From the sequence record MW879341.1: a stretch of DNA of 64,000 nt; one strand, written 5' to 3'. The position numbers and the translations under genes were made by a program. Under the pieces are notes generated by a model, which was not told the DNA's origin, made no database searches, and saw nothing but the letters and a program-made list of their open reading frames with translations. Every line of letters starts with the position of its first letter. The first letter of the stretch is position 1. Positions 21,634-30,581 of the stretch are shown here, in pieces.

Positions 21634-22120
21634 GGACGAGGTTTGCACGATGCAGCAGTCACCAGTAGAAAGATCGGATCGGGTAGACTCGTCCGATGGA
21701 TTCGCTACCATTACCGCTGACATCAAATGTGGACAGTTGGTATTTCTGATTAAAGATCACCAGGGCTGCTTTAGCCTCCTGACACTGGATCGTTCTGAGG
21801 ACAAATCCTCAGACAACTATCTGGATCTCTTTAATCGTTGGCTAAACAGTACAAGCTATAACGCTTTGACTGTGATGGGTGCAGGCGAGTTAGCTAAAGA
21901 TGAAACCGACCCAACGTCAGTACAATATTTCATTGACGATCAGCCCTTAGCCTTTGTTACCACCTTCGGTCACTCTGGCGCATTACCCATCTACCGGATA
22001 TCTCAACCTGAGACGTTGTGGTGGTTGACTATCTTCCACCATGCCATCAGCGAGAAAGATCCGATTATAGCGCTGCAAAACCAACTGGCCGTCTGTCACC
22101 TTGCAAAGCCAAAAAGCTGA
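21632..22120 (+). CDS. hypothetical protein (start probably 21650)
   Basis: 162-aa ORF overlapping the convergent gene by 25 nt; GAGG before ATG 21650. Confidence 0.55.
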   Translation: MDEVCTMQQSPVERSDRVDSSDGFATITADIKCGQLVFLIKDHQGCFSLLTLDRSEDKSSDNYLDLFNRWLNSTSYNALTVMGAGELAKDETDPTSVQYFIDDQPLAFVTTFGHSGALPIYRISQPETLWWLTIFHHAISEKDPIIALQNQLAVCHLAKPKS

Positions 22121-22923
22121 CGGATAATGCGCTGGCTTGAAACGTGGTCGTTTGTAAGCTGTGCTTTCTTCCAGGTTGTGTCCAGGTATTCCTGATACAG
22201 TTCTTCGGAGTCAGCGTAGCGGTCAACGATCTCTTTGAACTTCCCGATTTCCATACCGGACCAAAGTTCATTGCGGTCGATGTCGAGTTCCAGATTGTTA
22301 AAGATCCAAGACTTGACAGCCAGCGTACAGAGGTGACCAAATGCGCGATACAACGCAGGTTTGATATTGGAGAACTGTTCATCGTGGGCTAACATTACGT
22401 GAGCACCACCAGTTACCACCAACCCTGAGTTATCGTTAATGAGGATAACGTTCTCACCAATGATTTGCGCATTCGCTGTACTGATCAGTGGGATAGGTCC
22501 GTCTGCATCTTTGACAGCCTTACCTGCACCGAGCAATGGCGAACTACCACATCCTGTAGGTGAGGCGTAGGAGTTCGAGTTAGAACCACCGTAACTCGCC
22601 CACCCCTGTGCAATGTAATAAACTACATCCAACACAGACATTATGGTTCTACCGTTAGTCATCGACTTCGGGACACGGTAAATGTAGCTGTAAGCGTCGG
22701 GTTGGGTTGGTCTCAACTCATTGAGTGGGATCAACATCTGTTGGGCGTTGTGTAGGCTACAGTCAGTCCACACACGCTGAGAAATAACTCGGTCGAGTAT
22801 CACAGAGTCCAAAGAAACTGGAACAATCTTGTGTTGCTCGATGGAGTTAACAAAAGCGCGCTGTAAGATACCCAGGGGAATTTTCGCCCGGATCTCTTGC
22901 AGTGCTTTATCGATAGCGTTCAT
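22096..22923 (-). CDS. conserved phiKZ-family protein, probably virion-associated
   Basis: 275 aa; IPxxILxxAF, GENxILI and LAVKSWIFN motifs; divergent from PhuZ. Confidence 0.65.
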   Translation of the reverse strand: MNAIDKALQEIRAKIPLGILQRAFVNSIEQHKIVPVSLDSVILDRVISQRVWTDCSLHNAQQMLIPLNELRPTQPDAYSYIYRVPKSMTNGRTIMSVLDVVYYIAQGWASYGGSNSNSYASPTGCGSSPLLGAGKAVKDADGPIPLISTANAQIIGENVILINDNSGLVVTGGAHVMLAHDEQFSNIKPALYRAFGHLCTLAVKSWIFNNLELDIDRNELWSGMEIGKFKEIVDRYADSEELYQEYLDTTWKKAQLTNDHVSSQRIIRQLFGFAR

Positions 22924-22969
22924 GATACCTCCAATGGTATGAACAATATGTTAACTAATGAGGCATAAG

Positions 22970-23968
22970 ATGAGTTTAGGCAAAGTGGCTTTATATGGTT
23001 GTGGCGGTTTTGGTATCAACACCGTACGACCTTGGGATATGAGTCTGGAAGCCAACGCTGCTGCCGCTCAGAAGATCGCGGGTCATGCCAACATCCGTGT
23101 AACGTATGTCGATACGTCTCGCCGTAACCTGGTTGGTGACGAGAAAGAAGAGAACGTTTATCTGGCCTCCGGTATTGACGGCGCTGGTAAACTCCGTCGT
23201 GACTCCCACACAGCATTTGCGGAAGAAAACGCCGTTCAGCAGATTCTGGTTGCTCACCCACCTGAAGCACTGAACATCGTTCCATTCAGCCTGTCTGGTG
23301 GTTCCGGTAACACCGTAGGTACCGGTCTGGTCGAAGCTATGCTGAAAGCTGGCCATCGTGTTATTGCTGTCATCGTCGGTAGCTGTGAAAATGCCCTGAC
23401 CATGAAAAACAGCATTGACAGTCTGGTTACTCTGGATGGTAAAGCACGTAAACTGGGCGTACCGTTTGTTGTTGCCTATGAAGACAACGGCGATAACTCA
23501 GAGCGTGCTATCGTTGATGACCGCGTTAAGTCTATCATCGCTAGCCTGGTTGTCCTGTCTGGCCCGAACGTGCGTGAACTGGACGGCGCTGACTTAACCA
23601 ACTGGCTGCGTTACGACCGTATCCCTGGCGTGAACGTTGCACCACAGCTGAGCCTGCTGGAAGTGGTTTCTGATGCTGCGGAACTGAGCGGTATGTCTGA
23701 TCCAATCAGTATCGCGTCTATCATCTCTGACACCTCAGAAACCTTGAAAGGTCTGACCCCAGACTACTCTACCGTTGGCTACCACGCCGAAGGTACCGTA
23801 GGTGCACCTAGCTATCACTACGTCATCTCTGTTGACGCTGTGGCTGGCCTGGCTGGCATGCTGCGCGATCGTCAAGCTGAAGTTGAGAAGCGTCGTCAGG
23901 CGCGTAAGACCCAGCAAGCAATTGCGTCAGAAGCTGACAACATCGGTGATGACGGCTTCGCGTTCTAA
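22970..23968 (+). CDS. phuZ: PhuZ/TubZ phage tubulin
   Basis: YGCGGFGIN, DTS, GAGKLRR, tubulin signature SLSGGSGNTVG, T7-like loop LDGADLTNWL, acidic C-terminal tail DDGFAF. Confidence 0.9.
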   Translation: MSLGKVALYGCGGFGINTVRPWDMSLEANAAAAQKIAGHANIRVTYVDTSRRNLVGDEKEENVYLASGIDGAGKLRRDSHTAFAEENAVQQILVAHPPEALNIVPFSLSGGSGNTVGTGLVEAMLKAGHRVIAVIVGSCENALTMKNSIDSLVTLDGKARKLGVPFVVAYEDNGDNSERAIVDDRVKSIIASLVVLSGPNVRELDGADLTNWLRYDRIPGVNVAPQLSLLEVVSDAAELSGMSDPISIASIISDTSETLKGLTPDYSTVGYHAEGTVGAPSYHYVISVDAVAGLAGMLRDRQAEVEKRRQARKTQQAIASEADNIGDDGFAF

Positions 23969-23973
23969 ACACT

Positions 23974-24000
23974 GTGGGAGGGTTCGCCCTCCCATTTATT
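23974..24000 (+). terminator. UUCG hairpin terminator
   Basis: GTGGGAGGG-TTCG-CCCTCCCAT-TTATT. Confidence 0.65.
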
Positions 24001-24016: not shown

Positions 24017-26434
24017 ATGTCTATTCGTGACGCATTAGCCGCTGAGGGTAACGCACCCTTAGTGTTTATGGGCGGTACGTGTGCTGGACCGAAGTGGCGC
24101 GATCGCTTAGTCTCGCAAGTCTCACAAACCTACCGTTGGTTTAACCCGGTCGTTGATGACTGGACACCTGAAGCAAAAGAAGCCGAGATCGAAGTTCGTT
24201 CCCAGGCTGACGTTCTGCTTTACGGTATCACCCCTTATCAAGAAGGGTGCTACAGTTTCTTAGAAATGACGGAAGATGCCGTACGTTCTGAGAAGCGTGT
24301 AGTTGTGTGTTTCCTGCCTAGCTTTGAAGATAAAGCTTACAGTGAAGCACAGTGGTCTTCTATTATGTCGGCTAAGCAATTACTGGAGCGTCACAACGCT
24401 GTGGTCGTGCTGAGCATGGAAGAACTGATTGCGTGGTTTAATAGCTACAACGTTGCTTCCCCTGACAGTAAGATGATCGACACTCGCGAGTTGGTTCGTA
24501 AAGCGGCCGTCGTTGAGAAGCCAGACTCCCCGGTACAGCAACCATCAACCGCTGCTGATCTGGTTAGCCAAGTTCAGGAAGAACGTCGCGAAGAGTTTTC
24601 TAAACCTGGTCAGGAAGAACCCGGTACCACTGCTGCCAAAATGTTAGGTAACGTTGAGGTAAAGGGTGAAGGGACGCCGGCTGTAGAGAGTCATTCTGAG
24701 CTATCGGTGTCCCAGGAAGGTCTACTCTCATGGTTGGGTAAACTGTTTGGCACGACGTCAGACGACACGCCCGTGGCGAAACCAAACAGTAAACCACGCA
24801 TGGATCTCTGGAAGGTAACCAAAGAGATCAATAAAACGCTGGGTAACGCTGAATGGTTGAAAGAGAACTGGGATGCGGCTGTCGCTAAGCAATTGCAGTG
24901 GTCGTGCTTACTGGTCAACGGTAAGTTAGTCACTAACCCAGAGTCTGCGTTAGGTCGCGTACTGTCGGACGCTAAAACCTATACTCGCCAATCCAAATCC
25001 AAACTGGAACGTTACGCCAAAGAAATCTCTAAGGCTAACGACGCCATTCAGTCTGATTACTCTTCCGATAAACTGGCGGCCGATGATCTGAGTGCTGAAG
25101 TCATTAAGCGCATCGGACCAATCAAGCTGACAGCAGCGCCGGGTGACACTCGTGACAGTTGGGTGGGTGGTGTGACGGCTAAGCTCGTCTTCACTAAAGA
25201 TGGTAGTGGTAATCTGGCTGACAGTGAAGTTGGTAGCGTTTCTTCGGATGAGGTAACGTCTGAACTGTTGGCTGCGTATGTTCGCGGTGTAATGGATATC
25301 GTGGACTCTTACCTGCTGTTGATGACGGAGTGGGAATATGAGTATCCGTTTGACTTCTACGGAATTGATTTGACCGAAGGCTTCTGGCGCAGCGACGCGT
25401 TGTCTTCCGATGCTCACGGTGCTTCTGGTCCACATTACGCTGACGGTCAAGCAGCTGCGTGTACCGATCTGTATCACTACCCGATTCAGATGACAGCCAG
25501 TGCATTAGTGCAGATCTTGAGTAATGCTGACGCGGTGTCCGGTAAAACTATCTCAGTAGAGTCATATGACGACACTGTTGATTTGTTAGCGTCGACTGAA
25601 GGTTTCTTTGACAACATCGTTGGTTTTGTTAAAGGGTACAACAGCGACTCACCGGGTGATTTCAAAGACGGTAAGAAAATCTGGGCAGGTCAGTGGGTTG
25701 ATAAACAACGTGCTGAAATCGCTAAGACTTTCGCTAACCTCGGTTGGATTAAGCATAACTACCACGAACAAAAAGAGTCTATTTCTTACGAGATGGCTTG
25801 TCGTGTATCGTTGGGTGGTAAAGTACTGAAACCTGCTGAGGGTATCCGTGCTGCTATCAAACAGGTTAATGCTTTCTACGATCAGGTTTCTCCTGCTTGT
25901 GTGAAATACCGTAATGACTTGCACGCACTGGAAGACGAAGCTACTCGCCGCGTTAATGCGGGTGAGGACGCCGATAAGGTCGCTGCCGACATGTTAGCCA
26001 AAGGAGTCAAGCTGACCAAACCGATTAAGAACGGTTGGGTGAGTCCTGAGTTCGTTGGTGCGTATGTCATGCAGTTCAGTGACCGCCAACACAGCGTTGA
26101 ATCAATGACAGCTAAGATCAACTATCGACACATGATGGTTGTACCTGAGTTGTCCGTTGAGGACATCCTGGAAGCAGGTAAACTGTTAGCCGATTTTAAT
26201 AAGATCGCTGACCCTCTGTTCGAACGCTGCCCACACATGGGCTTGGGTTGTGACCACGGTGTCTGGGAGAATGGGTCATTCAATTACGACTCTAAGTTGG
26301 GTGAAGATCTCTACCATGAGTTCTACTTCCAATCTGTCCCTGGCAAATATAACGACTTCGCATACGAACCACTGGCGCTGTTCTACCAGTATCTGCGTGA
26401 CGTAGGTCGTTGGTTGCAGTCCTACACCCGTTAA
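24017..26434 (+). CDS. putative processed head (ejection) protein: N-terminal nucleoside 2-deoxyribosyltransferase-like domain plus two tandem head-protein repeats
   Basis: N-terminal VFMGGTC...WR...WFNPVVDDW...SFLE; S-x-E|G motifs at residues 232-235 (SQEG) and 526-529 (STEG), each followed by similar F/W-rich segments and a KTL/FxNxxW motif. Confidence 0.65.
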   Translation: MSIRDALAAEGNAPLVFMGGTCAGPKWRDRLVSQVSQTYRWFNPVVDDWTPEAKEAEIEVRSQADVLLYGITPYQEGCYSFLEMTEDAVRSEKRVVVCFLPSFEDKAYSEAQWSSIMSAKQLLERHNAVVVLSMEELIAWFNSYNVASPDSKMIDTRELVRKAAVVEKPDSPVQQPSTAADLVSQVQEERREEFSKPGQEEPGTTAAKMLGNVEVKGEGTPAVESHSELSVSQEGLLSWLGKLFGTTSDDTPVAKPNSKPRMDLWKVTKEINKTLGNAEWLKENWDAAVAKQLQWSCLLVNGKLVTNPESALGRVLSDAKTYTRQSKSKLERYAKEISKANDAIQSDYSSDKLAADDLSAEVIKRIGPIKLTAAPGDTRDSWVGGVTAKLVFTKDGSGNLADSEVGSVSSDEVTSELLAAYVRGVMDIVDSYLLLMTEWEYEYPFDFYGIDLTEGFWRSDALSSDAHGASGPHYADGQAAACTDLYHYPIQMTASALVQILSNADAVSGKTISVESYDDTVDLLASTEGFFDNIVGFVKGYNSDSPGDFKDGKKIWAGQWVDKQRAEIAKTFANLGWIKHNYHEQKESISYEMACRVSLGGKVLKPAEGIRAAIKQVNAFYDQVSPACVKYRNDLHALEDEATRRVNAGEDADKVAADMLAKGVKLTKPIKNGWVSPEFVGAYVMQFSDRQHSVESMTAKINYRHMMVVPELSVEDILEAGKLLADFNKIADPLFERCPHMGLGCDHGVWENGSFNYDSKLGEDLYHEFYFQSVPGKYNDFAYEPLALFYQYLRDVGRWLQSYTR

Positions 26435-26438
26435 TAAT

Positions 26439-26470
26439 AACCCTCTCCTTCGGGGGAGGGTTTTATGCCC
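26439..26470 (+). terminator. UUCG hairpin followed by TTTTATGCCC
   Basis: AACCCTCTCC-TTCG-GGGGAGGGTT. Confidence 0.7.
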
Positions 26471-27225: not shown

Positions 27226-27879
27226 ATGAAGCTCGTAATTTCAACTCTGGTAGCACTACTGACGATGTTCGCAGTACTGCCTGCAACAGCTAGTATCTCT
27301 ACGGACTCACCTTATTATCAAGACTGGTCCAAGCACCGCGCCGTTATCGTTAAAGCCTCCGTTCGTGCTAACACGGACCCAGGGAATATGGCCGCTGTTG
27401 CATTTATTGAGTCTAAGTTTAAAGGTAATATCCGTCGAGGGTTGTTCCAATTCGATCAGCCGACCTGGCGTGCAATGTTGAAAGAGTCTGGTGCTAAATA
27501 CGGACTGTCTCAACGTACTAAGATGTCTAACCCAATGGCCAACGCGTTGATGGCCGCAGAGCTTTGGAAAAAGAATCGCGCATTTCTTACAGCGAAACTC
27601 GGACGACCTGTTGCGGACTCCGAAGTTTATATGGCACACTTTTTAGGGAACGGCGGCGCATTAGCCATGTTGAAAGCAAAGCCTGGGCGTCTGGCTCGTG
27701 ACGTAGCGCCTATGCAAGCTAAATACAACCGTTCACTCTTTTACTCGAAAGGGAAGGGATTAACTGTTAGTCAGTTTCGTGTTGCAATGGCGGCAAAACT
27801 GGATGCTCCAAAAAGAACTTTTGGCAGTGAAGCTAGAGCTCGTGCTTTGATGAATCACGATTACGCTTACAATCGATAA
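27226..27879 (+). CDS. lytic transglycosylase (SLT fold, endolysin-like) with a signal peptide
   Basis: AFIESKF (catalytic Glu), GLFQF...TW, YMAHFLGxGGA as in phiKZ gp144-like catalytic domains; N-terminal MKLVISTLVALLTMFAVLPATA. Confidence 0.85.
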   Translation: MKLVISTLVALLTMFAVLPATASISTDSPYYQDWSKHRAVIVKASVRANTDPGNMAAVAFIESKFKGNIRRGLFQFDQPTWRAMLKESGAKYGLSQRTKMSNPMANALMAAELWKKNRAFLTAKLGRPVADSEVYMAHFLGNGGALAMLKAKPGRLARDVAPMQAKYNRSLFYSKGKGLTVSQFRVAMAAKLDAPKRTFGSEARARALMNHDYAYNR

Positions 27880-28521: not shown

Positions 28522-28579
28522 AAAGAAACTCCTCTACCCCGCAAAGGGTAGAGGGGTCTTTATGCGGCCTTTTTATTTT
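28516..28579. terminator. bidirectional terminator with GCATAAA/TTTATGC arms
   Basis: GCATAAA...CCTCTACCC-CGCAAA-GGGTAGAGG...TTTATGC; the helicase stop codon lies in the 3' arm. Confidence 0.75.
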
Positions 28580-30581
28580 GTGTGAAATACGGTACATCCA
28601 GACCGTAGCAGTTATCCACCATGTTGTTATTCCCACTGAAGGCTTCCATAGAAAGTTCAACAGTGTAGCCAGCCTTGGCACCCATGATAGAGTCAACCTG
28701 ATCTTTAGACCATTTGAGGATATCGACAGTACGACCAGTGATGTTCTCCAGTTTCCCGGTATCGAGCATCATGTTCAACACCTCGGTTGGGGTGTCTTGG
28801 TTGATACGGTCAATACGGCCAACGGCCTGTTGGTAGTCGTGATCGCGGAAGGGTAAGTTCAATGCAACCATTGTAGACGCAGCGACTAAAGGTACGGCAG
28901 TGGAGAGCGACTGGTAGGTAGCAATCAATACACGCACTTTAGGGTTACGTTCAAACTCGTCGGTAATGGCCTTCAAGTTCTTGTTAGTTGCACCGTGTAC
29001 CACCAACGGTTCCAGACCAGCCTTGCGACAGATGTCAGCGGCTAACTCAGCAGCTTCAACATACGAGGTGAAGATAACGGTCTTCTTAGTAGCGCCGTTA
29101 ACAATGTCAGGCAGACGCATGTATGGGATGGTAGCCAACACAGCTTCAGTACGACGACGACCAACGATTCTACCCAGACACTCACCACGCACTTTCAGGT
29201 CCACGTATTTGATAACACTACGCGAATCTTTAAACGGTTGCTTGAGTTGTTGTGGGAGAGTCGGCATGATCTGATTCAACTCGTACTGGTTACAGAAGTG
29301 TGCCTGAGTAACCATGGTAGCTGGATCGTATCCCTTACGAATCATCTTGACGTATTCATTATACTGCTTGAACGTATCCATCTCCGCTTTACTGGAGAGT
29401 GTAGCGTAGTGGATCTCAAGACCACGATCGTAGAGTCGCTCGAACTCTTTGAAGTTCGCCTTGTAGTAATTCATGCGCTCTTTAATGAAGCGCAGCATGT
29501 CATCCTTGAGCTGGTCGAGTGTGAACGGACCTGGGTTTGGAATCTGAACAGGAACGTCAGTGTAACTCGGTTTGGATTTAACCACTTCCACCTTATAAGA
29601 CACCACACCCATTCGGTTGTTGATAATATCGTTGGCCTTGCTACTATTGCGTCCAAAGATATTACGGAAGCGTTGCTCAACGTCCGGGTTAAACAGTGGG
29701 TCAAAGCTACGCAGCATTGGGATCATCTCTGAACCCAGTGCTTTGATTGGGGTAGCGGACAACCAGGCTACAGATACTGGCTGTAGTTGCTTCACACACT
29801 CCAACATCAACTGGGTACGCTCAGACGACAGTTCGTTCAAGTTGTGTGACTCGTCCAGAATGACCATAACCCGTTTACCGGCAAAGGCTTTCAGACACGA
29901 CTGCAAATAACCAAATGCTTCGTAATGGAACATGCAGTATTTCGGTGGCTTCTTAGGCAGAGGCTGGCCGTCACTTGCAGTCCAATAGTTAGCGGGGTTC
30001 TTGAATTCGTCAGTGGCCGTAGGAATCCATACAGTAGCCAACGCACGGCGCGGTGGAAGGATAATGACGTGGTCTACATTCAAACACTCTGCCAAGTAGT
30101 ACGCAGCCATCGTCTTACCCGTACCCACACCCATAGCAACAACGTAGCCGTTTAGGCCATACTGCTGGGTGAGCATATCGTACGCTTCTAAGAACTGGCG
30201 TTGGTGTTTAAGAGGTTGTTTCTTAAACATTGATAACTTGCTGTAGTCGAGAATGGATGGGAATGTCTGATTGATATTCTTCAACCAGGTAAACTCCATC
30301 AACTCTTTACGCAGAGTGTTCAGTGTCCGCAGGGTAGTACGACCAGTGTTCGTCTTACGCAGTTCGTCCAACATATAGAGGAACTCAAGCGCAAAGAACT
30401 TAGGCAGAACGATCTTCGATTTACCTTGGAAACTGAACATATGGGCAGCGATTTTATTCGTGCGCCAATAGCGATAGATATCAGCAGTAATGCTGTCGGC
30501 TGGCAGACCGGTTATGATGACGTTAGAGCCTTCCTCTTTAACGTCTATCACTCCTAGCAATCTGCTGAGGTATTCATTCAT
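28560..30581 (-). CDS. SNF2/DEAD-like superfamily 2 helicase
   Basis: Motif I MGVGTGKT, motif II ILDESHN, motif III LSATP, motif VI QAVGRIDR. Confidence 0.88.
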   Translation of the reverse strand: MNEYLSRLLGVIDVKEEGSNVIITGLPADSITADIYRYWRTNKIAAHMFSFQGKSKIVLPKFFALEFLYMLDELRKTNTGRTTLRTLNTLRKELMEFTWLKNINQTFPSILDYSKLSMFKKQPLKHQRQFLEAYDMLTQQYGLNGYVVAMGVGTGKTMAAYYLAECLNVDHVIILPPRRALATVWIPTATDEFKNPANYWTASDGQPLPKKPPKYCMFHYEAFGYLQSCLKAFAGKRVMVILDESHNLNELSSERTQLMLECVKQLQPVSVAWLSATPIKALGSEMIPMLRSFDPLFNPDVEQRFRNIFGRNSSKANDIINNRMGVVSYKVEVVKSKPSYTDVPVQIPNPGPFTLDQLKDDMLRFIKERMNYYKANFKEFERLYDRGLEIHYATLSSKAEMDTFKQYNEYVKMIRKGYDPATMVTQAHFCNQYELNQIMPTLPQQLKQPFKDSRSVIKYVDLKVRGECLGRIVGRRRTEAVLATIPYMRLPDIVNGATKKTVIFTSYVEAAELAADICRKAGLEPLVVHGATNKNLKAITDEFERNPKVRVLIATYQSLSTAVPLVAASTMVALNLPFRDHDYQQAVGRIDRINQDTPTEVLNMMLDTGKLENITGRTVDILKWSKDQVDSIMGAKAGYTVELSMEAFSGNNNMVDNCYGLDVPYFTQNKKAA

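Follow-up and report, generated by a model that had tools for sequence, protein, structure and literature searches.

The gene described here lies in a 64,000-nucleotide stretch (the window; window position equals record position minus 124,000) of the genome of Erwinia phage pEa_SNUABM_54 (MW879341.1, 272,635 bp), a giant fire-blight phage. It occupies positions 24017..26434 on the plus strand as a single open reading frame and encodes a precursor of 805 aa and 89.5 kDa, labelled P0001 below. The protein is identical to QXO10977.1, annotated as 'hypothetical protein', and the match to the record is 100% over the gene. Directly upstream lies the gene for the PhuZ tubulin (22958..23968, +), and from this and the other neighbouring genes the phage is classed as a nucleus-forming jumbo phage (chimallivirus). 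The precursor joins a nucleoside 2-deoxyribosyltransferase (NDT)-like domain, an acidic linker and two related units that are homologous to part of the processed head protein gp303 of phage phiKZ, and is probably itself a head protein cut by the prohead protease.

Architecture of the precursor

The protein starts with an extension of ten residues (1-10; 24017..24046, +) that ends in L-A-A-E|G, followed at about residues 11-145 by the NDT-like (Nuc_deoxyri_tr2) domain (24047..24451, +), which was assigned from a Pfam match, an alignment of phage homologues and a putatively compatible fold. The subsequent linker, residues about 146-234 (24452..24718, +), is predicted to be disordered and contains two candidate cleavage sites, A-V-E|S (residues 222-225; 24680-24691, +) and, at its end, S-Q-E|G (residues 232-235; 24710-24721, +). 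Two gp303-like modules make up the remainder: unit A, residues 235-515 (24719..25561, +), would have 30.5 kDa if released, and unit B, residues 529-805 (25601..26431, +), 31.5 kDa. The junction between them (25553..25603, +) again carries two candidate sites, S-V-E|S (513-516) and S-T-E|G (526-529).

An earlier note on this DNA, made from the letters alone, had proposed an N-terminal domain of NDT type with a TIR/SLOG-related fold, a charged linker, two similar units of ~280 aa and S-x-E sites at both junctions, and this layout was largely borne out. Pfam family Nuc_deoxyri_tr2 (PF15891) matched residues 15-98 with 35.9 bits (E 1e-8, profile positions 3-101 of 105) against a gathering cut-off of 30 bits. 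TIR_2 reached a sub-threshold match only, which is all that speaks for the link to TIR. The linker is indeed charged: Glu, Ser and Pro abound in residues 145-234, with 13 Glu among 90 residues, and model confidence is low there. Self-alignment by BLAST of residues 230-525 with 526-805 gave 25% identity over 147 aa (E 2e-6), and the family profile spans units A and B end to end with 349 and 412 bits, respectively; they are two diverged modules of ~280 aa each. The motifs SQEG, SVES and STEG lie at residues 232-235, 513-516 and 526-529 as claimed. Given that S/A/G-x-E triplets occur 19 times in the whole protein, their presence alone is a weak argument, and it is the conservation of the junction sites within the family that carries weight.

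The unit family and its junction motif

A word-based search retrieved 11 full-length relatives, all of which possess the same NDT domain. Most of them have 507-546 aa and a single unit, which resembles residues 235-515 (type A) in some and residues 529-805 (type B) in others; P0004 (804 aa, 48% identical) carries A followed by B, as does the window protein. In the closest relative, L003, which is collinear with 85-87% nucleotide identity, unit B is a clean indel: an 875-bp stretch from just after I-S-V-E-S to the stop (25564..26438, +) is replaced by 45 bp. The junction is thus a point at which entire units come and go as modules.

When 1.84 billion representatives were searched exhaustively by HMMER, the unit profile recovered 86 proteins at E <=1e-3, 43 of them at 1e-10 or better. 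The majority are 280-310 aa long, and their unit begins at residue 10-30; a substantial minority contain two to four units. Among other chimalliviruses, stand-alone units were found in Eowyn, LPKP23, Centimanus, Moabite with the 2050HW group, and two metagenomic proteins; those of LPKP23 and Moabite are relatives of unit A, and P0013, P0014 and the Eowyn protein are relatives of unit B. The gene for P0014 (L009 5421-6897, on a 93-kb contig) is located right after a dihydrofolate reductase gene and beside two tailspike-like genes (Head_binding, Phage_tail_beta), so that the unit family may extend past the PhuZ-linked locus and perhaps past the chimalliviruses. Searched against whole phage records, the unit profile found nothing in Goslar or PhiPA3, and in RAY only a match with E 0.2.

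A strongly conserved feature of the unit family is found at the unit boundary. Alignment of 12 units showed nearly invariant V-S-x-E-G columns (V13, S14, E16, G17) at the N-terminus, and 102 of the 105 unit starts among the 86 representatives show [V/I/L]-[S/A]-x-E|G-hydrophobic-hydrophobic-D. Many unit starts, including those of the window protein, are preceded at a distance of 6-12 residues by a second S/A-x-E|S site, and in stand-alone unit proteins a leader of 15-22 aa precedes the motif. In the AF2 model of unit B, predicted with a pLDDT of 82.5 and a pTM of 0.80, the first 17 residues (513-529, from S-V-E-S to S-T-E-G) are disordered (pLDDT 27-42), and helix 1 begins right after the Gly. 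A short conserved motif in a predicted disordered stretch at a domain boundary has the look of a processing site, and the family motif would then mark the position of cleavage.

Among predicted viral structures in BFVD, unit B matched the stand-alone unit of Eowyn (E 1.5e-11, TM 0.68). Weaker matches (E 1e-4 to 1e-1) were to many entries from jumbo phages that bear the names 'internal head protein' or 'virion structural protein'. A PDB sequence search with the unit profile gave no match, and an NCBIfam search returned nothing meaningful. The best Foldseek match of unit B in the PDB (IpaD/SipD, E 0.7, TM 0.2-0.28) and the generic helical matches of a wide VIA search (best Z 5.7) were not accepted as kinship.

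Relationship to phiKZ gp303 and the prohead protease

In the phiKZ genome the unit profile matches positions 274435-275022 (-) with E 5e-13 (profile positions 11-217 of 296). This segment lies inside PHIKZ303, and a local hmmsearch of the profile against gp303 gave 1.9e-15. PHIKZ303 is annotated as 'structural head protein', and gp303 belongs to PHROG 24656, 'virion structural protein'. The match covers residues 362-557 of gp303 and starts exactly at V-S-N-E|G-L-I-D (362-369), i.e., at the junction motif. The gp303 protein has been described as proteolytically processed, packaged into the head, tolerant of transposon insertions and non-essential (2025 preprint). Semi-tryptic cleavages have been mapped to gp303 together with an enrichment of an L-S-x-E motif, which agrees with the S/A/G-x-E rule for the protease gp175 (Fossati et al. 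2023).

With phiKZ gp175 as the query, a homologue was identified at MW879341 102674-103375 (36% identity, E 3.5e-31); a Pfam search of the phage record for Peptidase_S77 (PF03420) gave no match. The gp175-type protease (258 aa; L021 1486-2262, outside the window) possesses G-L-E|S, M-G-E|S and G-N-E|S near its C-terminus, which is consistent with self-processing at the same kind of site. The junction motif of the unit family fits the S/A/G-x-E specificity that has been published for prohead proteases of chimalliviruses. The homologous protease gp245 of SPN3US has been reported to cut after A-X-E, with Val preferred at P4 and Ser at P1', and V-S-Q-E|G, A-V-E|S and S-V-E|S of the window protein fit this preference.

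That the product is a head protein cut by the prohead protease had been guessed in the earlier note from the motifs. The guess has gained indirect support, since the units share homology with the head protein gp303, for which proteolytic processing has been reported; the near-invariant junction motif with its leaders, the predicted disorder around the site and the gp175-like protease point in the same direction. Cleavage of the window protein itself is predicted on these grounds.

The NDT-like domain

The predicted secondary structure of residues 15-143 alternates between strands and helices, and the relatives P0025 and P0026 match PF15891 with 33.5 and 31.1 bits. A VIA search with residues 11-148 placed YtoQ, a putative NDT, an NDT and human DNPH1 at the top (Z 10.0-10.9, root-mean-square deviation 3.3-3.4 Å, 122-127 residues). 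CMP N-glycosidases scored ~9.2-9.5, and P-loop GTPases, with Z 9-10, came within one Z unit of the NDT matches. Foldseek gave E 0.018-0.037 for a model of the NDT region, which is weak (pLDDT 52-79 in the region) and was taken cautiously from a poor full-length AF2 prediction with a mean pLDDT of 44.8. The NDT profile did not match in phiKZ, RAY, Goslar, PhiPA3 or Moabite.

Across fused and stand-alone phage homologues of 32-80% identity, the residues G19-G20-T21, R28, N43-P44, W49, I71-T72-P73, G77, Y79-S80, E83, E86, S115 and N142 are invariant, with E83 and E86 located behind the G77-x-Y-S80 loop. The acidic and polar residues of this set (E83, E86, S80, Y79, R28, N43, N142) suggest an active-site pattern, in which E83 may be the nucleophile, judging from the pattern G-x-x-S-x-x-E. 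We consider the domain most likely to be a nucleotide N-glycosidase or a nucleotide-binding enzyme that would serve as a functional cargo. It would be compatible with a Pfam score just 6 bits over the cut-off, with the failure to match any solved NDT or DNPH1 by sequence, and with a fold match that does not separate from generic Rossmann-like GTPases, if the domain were inactive and purely structural or ligand-binding in a sponge-like manner, not an N-glycosidase or transferase. The invariance of those seven residues in fused and stand-alone homologues of such divergence argues against an inactive domain, which we regard as unlikely.

Within the same protein pairs, the NDT domains are 75-80% identical in comparison to 33-50% for the units. 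The NDT domain is thus under strong constraint and is the most constrained part of the protein. The preceding extension of residues 1-10 is invariant in P0001-P0012, absent from the stand-alone NDT homologues of Psa21, D6 and phiCD418, and unconserved in P0025 and P0026; with low confidence, it might be an additional leader or cleavage site.

Fusion of the units to other domains

Pfam scans of the longer family members revealed the same NDT subfamily N-terminal to the units in P0025 and P0026 and C-terminal to them in P0017, P0019, P0021, P0024 and P0033. These fused domains are 34-60% identical to the NDT domain of the window (BLAST), and S/A-x-E|S/G sites are present at the NDT-unit junctions in both orders. 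The occurrence of both orders argues for a functional partnership and against the NDT domain as a mere N-terminal pro-piece.

Other domains are joined to the units as well. The metagenomic protein P0082 (1151 aa) consists of a helicase and a C-terminal unit on either side of P-S-F-E|G; its helicase is 38% identical to the one encoded in the window at 28560-30581, which is homologous to gp203 of phiKZ, a head-packaged and processed helicase (2025 preprint). In P0094 (709 aa) a unit is fused to an RyR domain (PF02026, 46 bits). P0047 (1393 aa) was observed to contain four unit-like segments plus hydrophobic stretches. In Moabite (L006 4190-5735), the gene immediately ahead of the stand-alone unit gene CPT_Moabite_093 is annotated as DprA-like (SLOG superfamily). 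The DprA-like product showed neither similarity to the NDT domain nor a Pfam match, and the arrangement was not counted as a conserved NDT-unit pairing.

Genomic neighbourhood

Upstream, PhuZ is adjoined by a divergent gene for a DUF7484 protein (22096-22923, -; PF24302, 264 bits). A gene of similar size is found at the same place and in the same orientation in RAY (gp209) and Goslar (Goslar_00202); judged in these two phages on size, position and orientation alone, the DUF7484 gene may be a conserved neighbour of PhuZ. Downstream, an SLT-type transglycosylase of 217 aa (27226-27879, +) matches phrog_4067 and phrog_3201. It resembles the lytic domain of giant tail-associated proteins and may be a stand-alone endolysin or a virion lysin. 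It is flanked by genes for proteins of 193 aa and 195 aa without family matches. The superfamily 2 helicase homologous to phiKZ gp203 (36% identity, E 1e-137) follows at 28560..30581 on the minus strand. The gene order DUF7484, PhuZ, NDT-unit gene, 193-aa gene, SLT gene, 195-aa gene and helicase is kept at all loci examined.

Two G+C-rich hairpins with a UUCG tetraloop flank the NDT-unit gene, one on either side. The first, GGGAGGG-TTCG-CCCTCCC followed by ATTTATT (23976..23993, +), lies between the PhuZ stop and the ribosome-binding site of the gene. The second (26441..26466, +), directly after the stop codon, is followed by a T-run and is terminator-like.

Proposed maturation and alternatives

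We propose that the precursor would be incorporated into the prohead and that the gp175-type protease would cut it after Glu, at A-V-E224|S and/or S-Q-E234|G and at S-V-E515|S and/or S-T-E528|G. The expected products would be the NDT domain with its acidic tail (~24-25 kDa), units A and B of 30.5 and 31.5 kDa, respectively, and small peptides from the junctions. The units would stay behind as internal head proteins and thus form the head-resident part, and the NDT part would either be retained and ejected with the DNA or be discarded. Between these fates we favour a role as cargo, in which the NDT part would be carried in the capsid, probably be released into the cell with the DNA, and act before phage gene expression. 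We infer packaging, cleavage, the retention or ejection of the NDT part and its activity from the comparisons described above, and our confidence differs between the parts of the proposal. A processed head protein is the probable identity of the product on the basis of its sequence; the full statement, a processed head polyprotein including the release of a functional NDT product, is evenly balanced; and the delivery of the NDT part into the host is a tentative suggestion that we hold to be less likely than not.

Several observations weigh against the proposed maturation. The gene adjoins PhuZ amid non-structural genes and has a hairpin on each side. In a PHROG search, P0001 had no match, and neither did its separate parts or units (E up to 0.1-1); the stand-alone unit of Eowyn does match the PHROG 24656 model, weakly (7.8e-4), and the window units are accordingly best placed as a sister group of PHROG 24656 and not as members. 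Unit A of P0004 has V-S-R-G-G in place of S-x-E-G. Moreover, the motif is conserved past P1 (G-hydrophobic-hydrophobic-D), and a structural role is possible. With regard to the NDT domain, a PDB sequence search with the domain and its profile aligned no solved enzyme and left the catalytic residue unplaced. As to delivery, gp303-FLAG was blotted and was not among the validated injected proteins (Fossati et al. 2023). Finally, the reported cleavages of SPN3US substrates all remove N-terminal propeptides, which contain several internal motifs; the N-terminal NDT part could therefore be discarded.

This last point leads to an alternative in which the protein is processed and head-associated as well, with the NDT domain and linker as a propeptide only. 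It would act in the cytoplasm or prohead, be it in targeting, in folding or in a reaction that precedes packaging, and would afterwards be degraded and expelled, so that the units alone stay and no enzyme is delivered. The NDT domain itself holds S/A/G-x-E triplets at residues 53-55, 102-104 and 133-135, comparable to the internal motifs of the SPN3US propeptides, and the acidic, disordered linker would suit such a fate. In the five representatives with the NDT domain C-terminal to the units, it cannot be an N-terminal propeptide; furthermore, leaders of 10-30 aa suffice for stand-alone units, and the propeptide would be the most conserved part of the protein. We therefore consider a mere propeptide quite unlikely.

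It is improbable to a similar degree that P0001 is a non-virion protein, i.e., an uncleaved multidomain protein of the cytoplasm or phage nucleus that is co-expressed with PhuZ and in which V-S-x-E-G caps the unit structurally or serves in interactions: the synteny with PhuZ and DUF7484 in all relatives, a gap to PhuZ that comprises the hairpin and about 20 nt with no evident promoter, the conservation on the P' side of the motif and the lack of a PHROG or Pfam virion family match for P0001 are opposed by the homology of the units to a processed head protein, the agreement of the motif with the protease specificity in disordered sequence, the leaders ahead of it in stand-alone units, the fusion of a unit to a helicase of the packaged gp203 type, and the scattering of structural genes in phiKZ-like phages, e.g., the head protein gp35 near PhuZ gp39.

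Returning to the processed head protein, a broader hypothesis would be that gp303-like units are modular carriers of chimalliviruses, each led by a [VIL]-[SA]-x-E|G site, which load cargoes (the NDT-like domain, a gp203-type helicase, an RyR-domain protein) that are freed by the prohead protease. The ejected NDT domain would act within the first minutes of infection, before the phage nucleus has formed, and its targets would be host nucleotides or immune signals derived from nucleotides. We regard this generalization as speculative and somewhat doubtful. Injected virion proteins are prime candidates for the protection of nucleus-forming phages between DNA injection and nucleus assembly, and the NDT-like domain, with its strong conservation, is a concrete candidate for such a cargo. 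The recurrence of the units in tandem and in fusion with enzymes suggests a general route for loading enzymes into chimallivirus capsids, and phiKZ gp303 now has a family and a defining junction motif.

Comparison with known systems

Internal head proteins that are processed by a protease are a known kind, and so are enzymes joined to head components. A literature search of limited reach found no description of a gp303-like unit family with a defining junction motif, and none of tandem or cargo-fusion unit architectures or of an NDT-like domain in this role.

The NDT superfamily (nucleoside 2-deoxyribosyltransferase, DNPH1/Rcl, the MilB/BcmB CMP N-glycosidases, YtoQ) resembles the window domain by the Pfam match over the cut-off and may share its fold (Z 9.2-10.9, 110-127 residues aligned, 3.1-3.8 Å, 9-20% identity). 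In contrast to its solved members, to which no sequence similarity is detectable, the window domain is fused to a virion module. Head-packaged enzyme fusions such as MuF/portal and polyvalent proteins (Iyer et al., PMC9503650, PMC7824862) likewise join an enzyme to a head component, and nucleotide- or NAD-processing domains in such fusions were predicted to be packaged and injected early (PMC9503650, PMC7824862). Here, however, the carrier is a chimallivirus gp303-like module with protease sites between the domains, and these surveys do not mention an NDT-like domain in this context. A precedent for a packaged counter-defence protein is phiKZ gp184 (Tad1), an injected virion protein.

The nearest characterized relative of the units is phiKZ gp303, the C-terminal part of which (362-557 or beyond) is homologous to them and has the same motif at its start. 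Ahead of the unit, gp303 has a long N-terminal part, and close gp303-like proteins have 2-3 motif-led segments; unlike the window protein, gp303 lacks the NDT domain and any Pfam domain. A more distant comparison can be made with phiKZ_IP (PF12699; phiKZ gp92-97, RAY gp295), the members of which are head-internal, processed by the protease and arranged in paralogous arrays, and some of which are injected. In BFVD, the unit B model matches the Ea35-70 orthologue of RAY gp295 with E about 1e-3, and this orthologue is a strong PF12699 member. Five members of the unit family show sub-threshold PF12699 matches (16-21 bits vs 27) in the same profile region; P0001 has no PF12699 match. Membership of the units in phiKZ_IP was rejected as unproven, with hhalign giving 1.7-5.1% probability against phiKZ gp92-97 and RAY gp295-298. 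The gp303-like units are possibly a remote branch of an internal head protein superfamily.

In phage T4, the internal proteins and Alt carry a capsid-targeting sequence that is cut by gp21 after Glu. The stand-alone units are similar in having a short N-terminal leader and then a cleavage-type motif ending in Glu. They differ from the T4 proteins in the specificity, S/A/G-x-E here in comparison to L/I-x-E in T4, and in that the modules of the window family have ~280 aa, occur in tandem and as fusion partners, and have a putative targeting role. Should the units turn out to be packaging modules, foreign proteins could be brought into the heads of jumbo phages with their help, in the way the T4 capsid-targeting sequence is employed.

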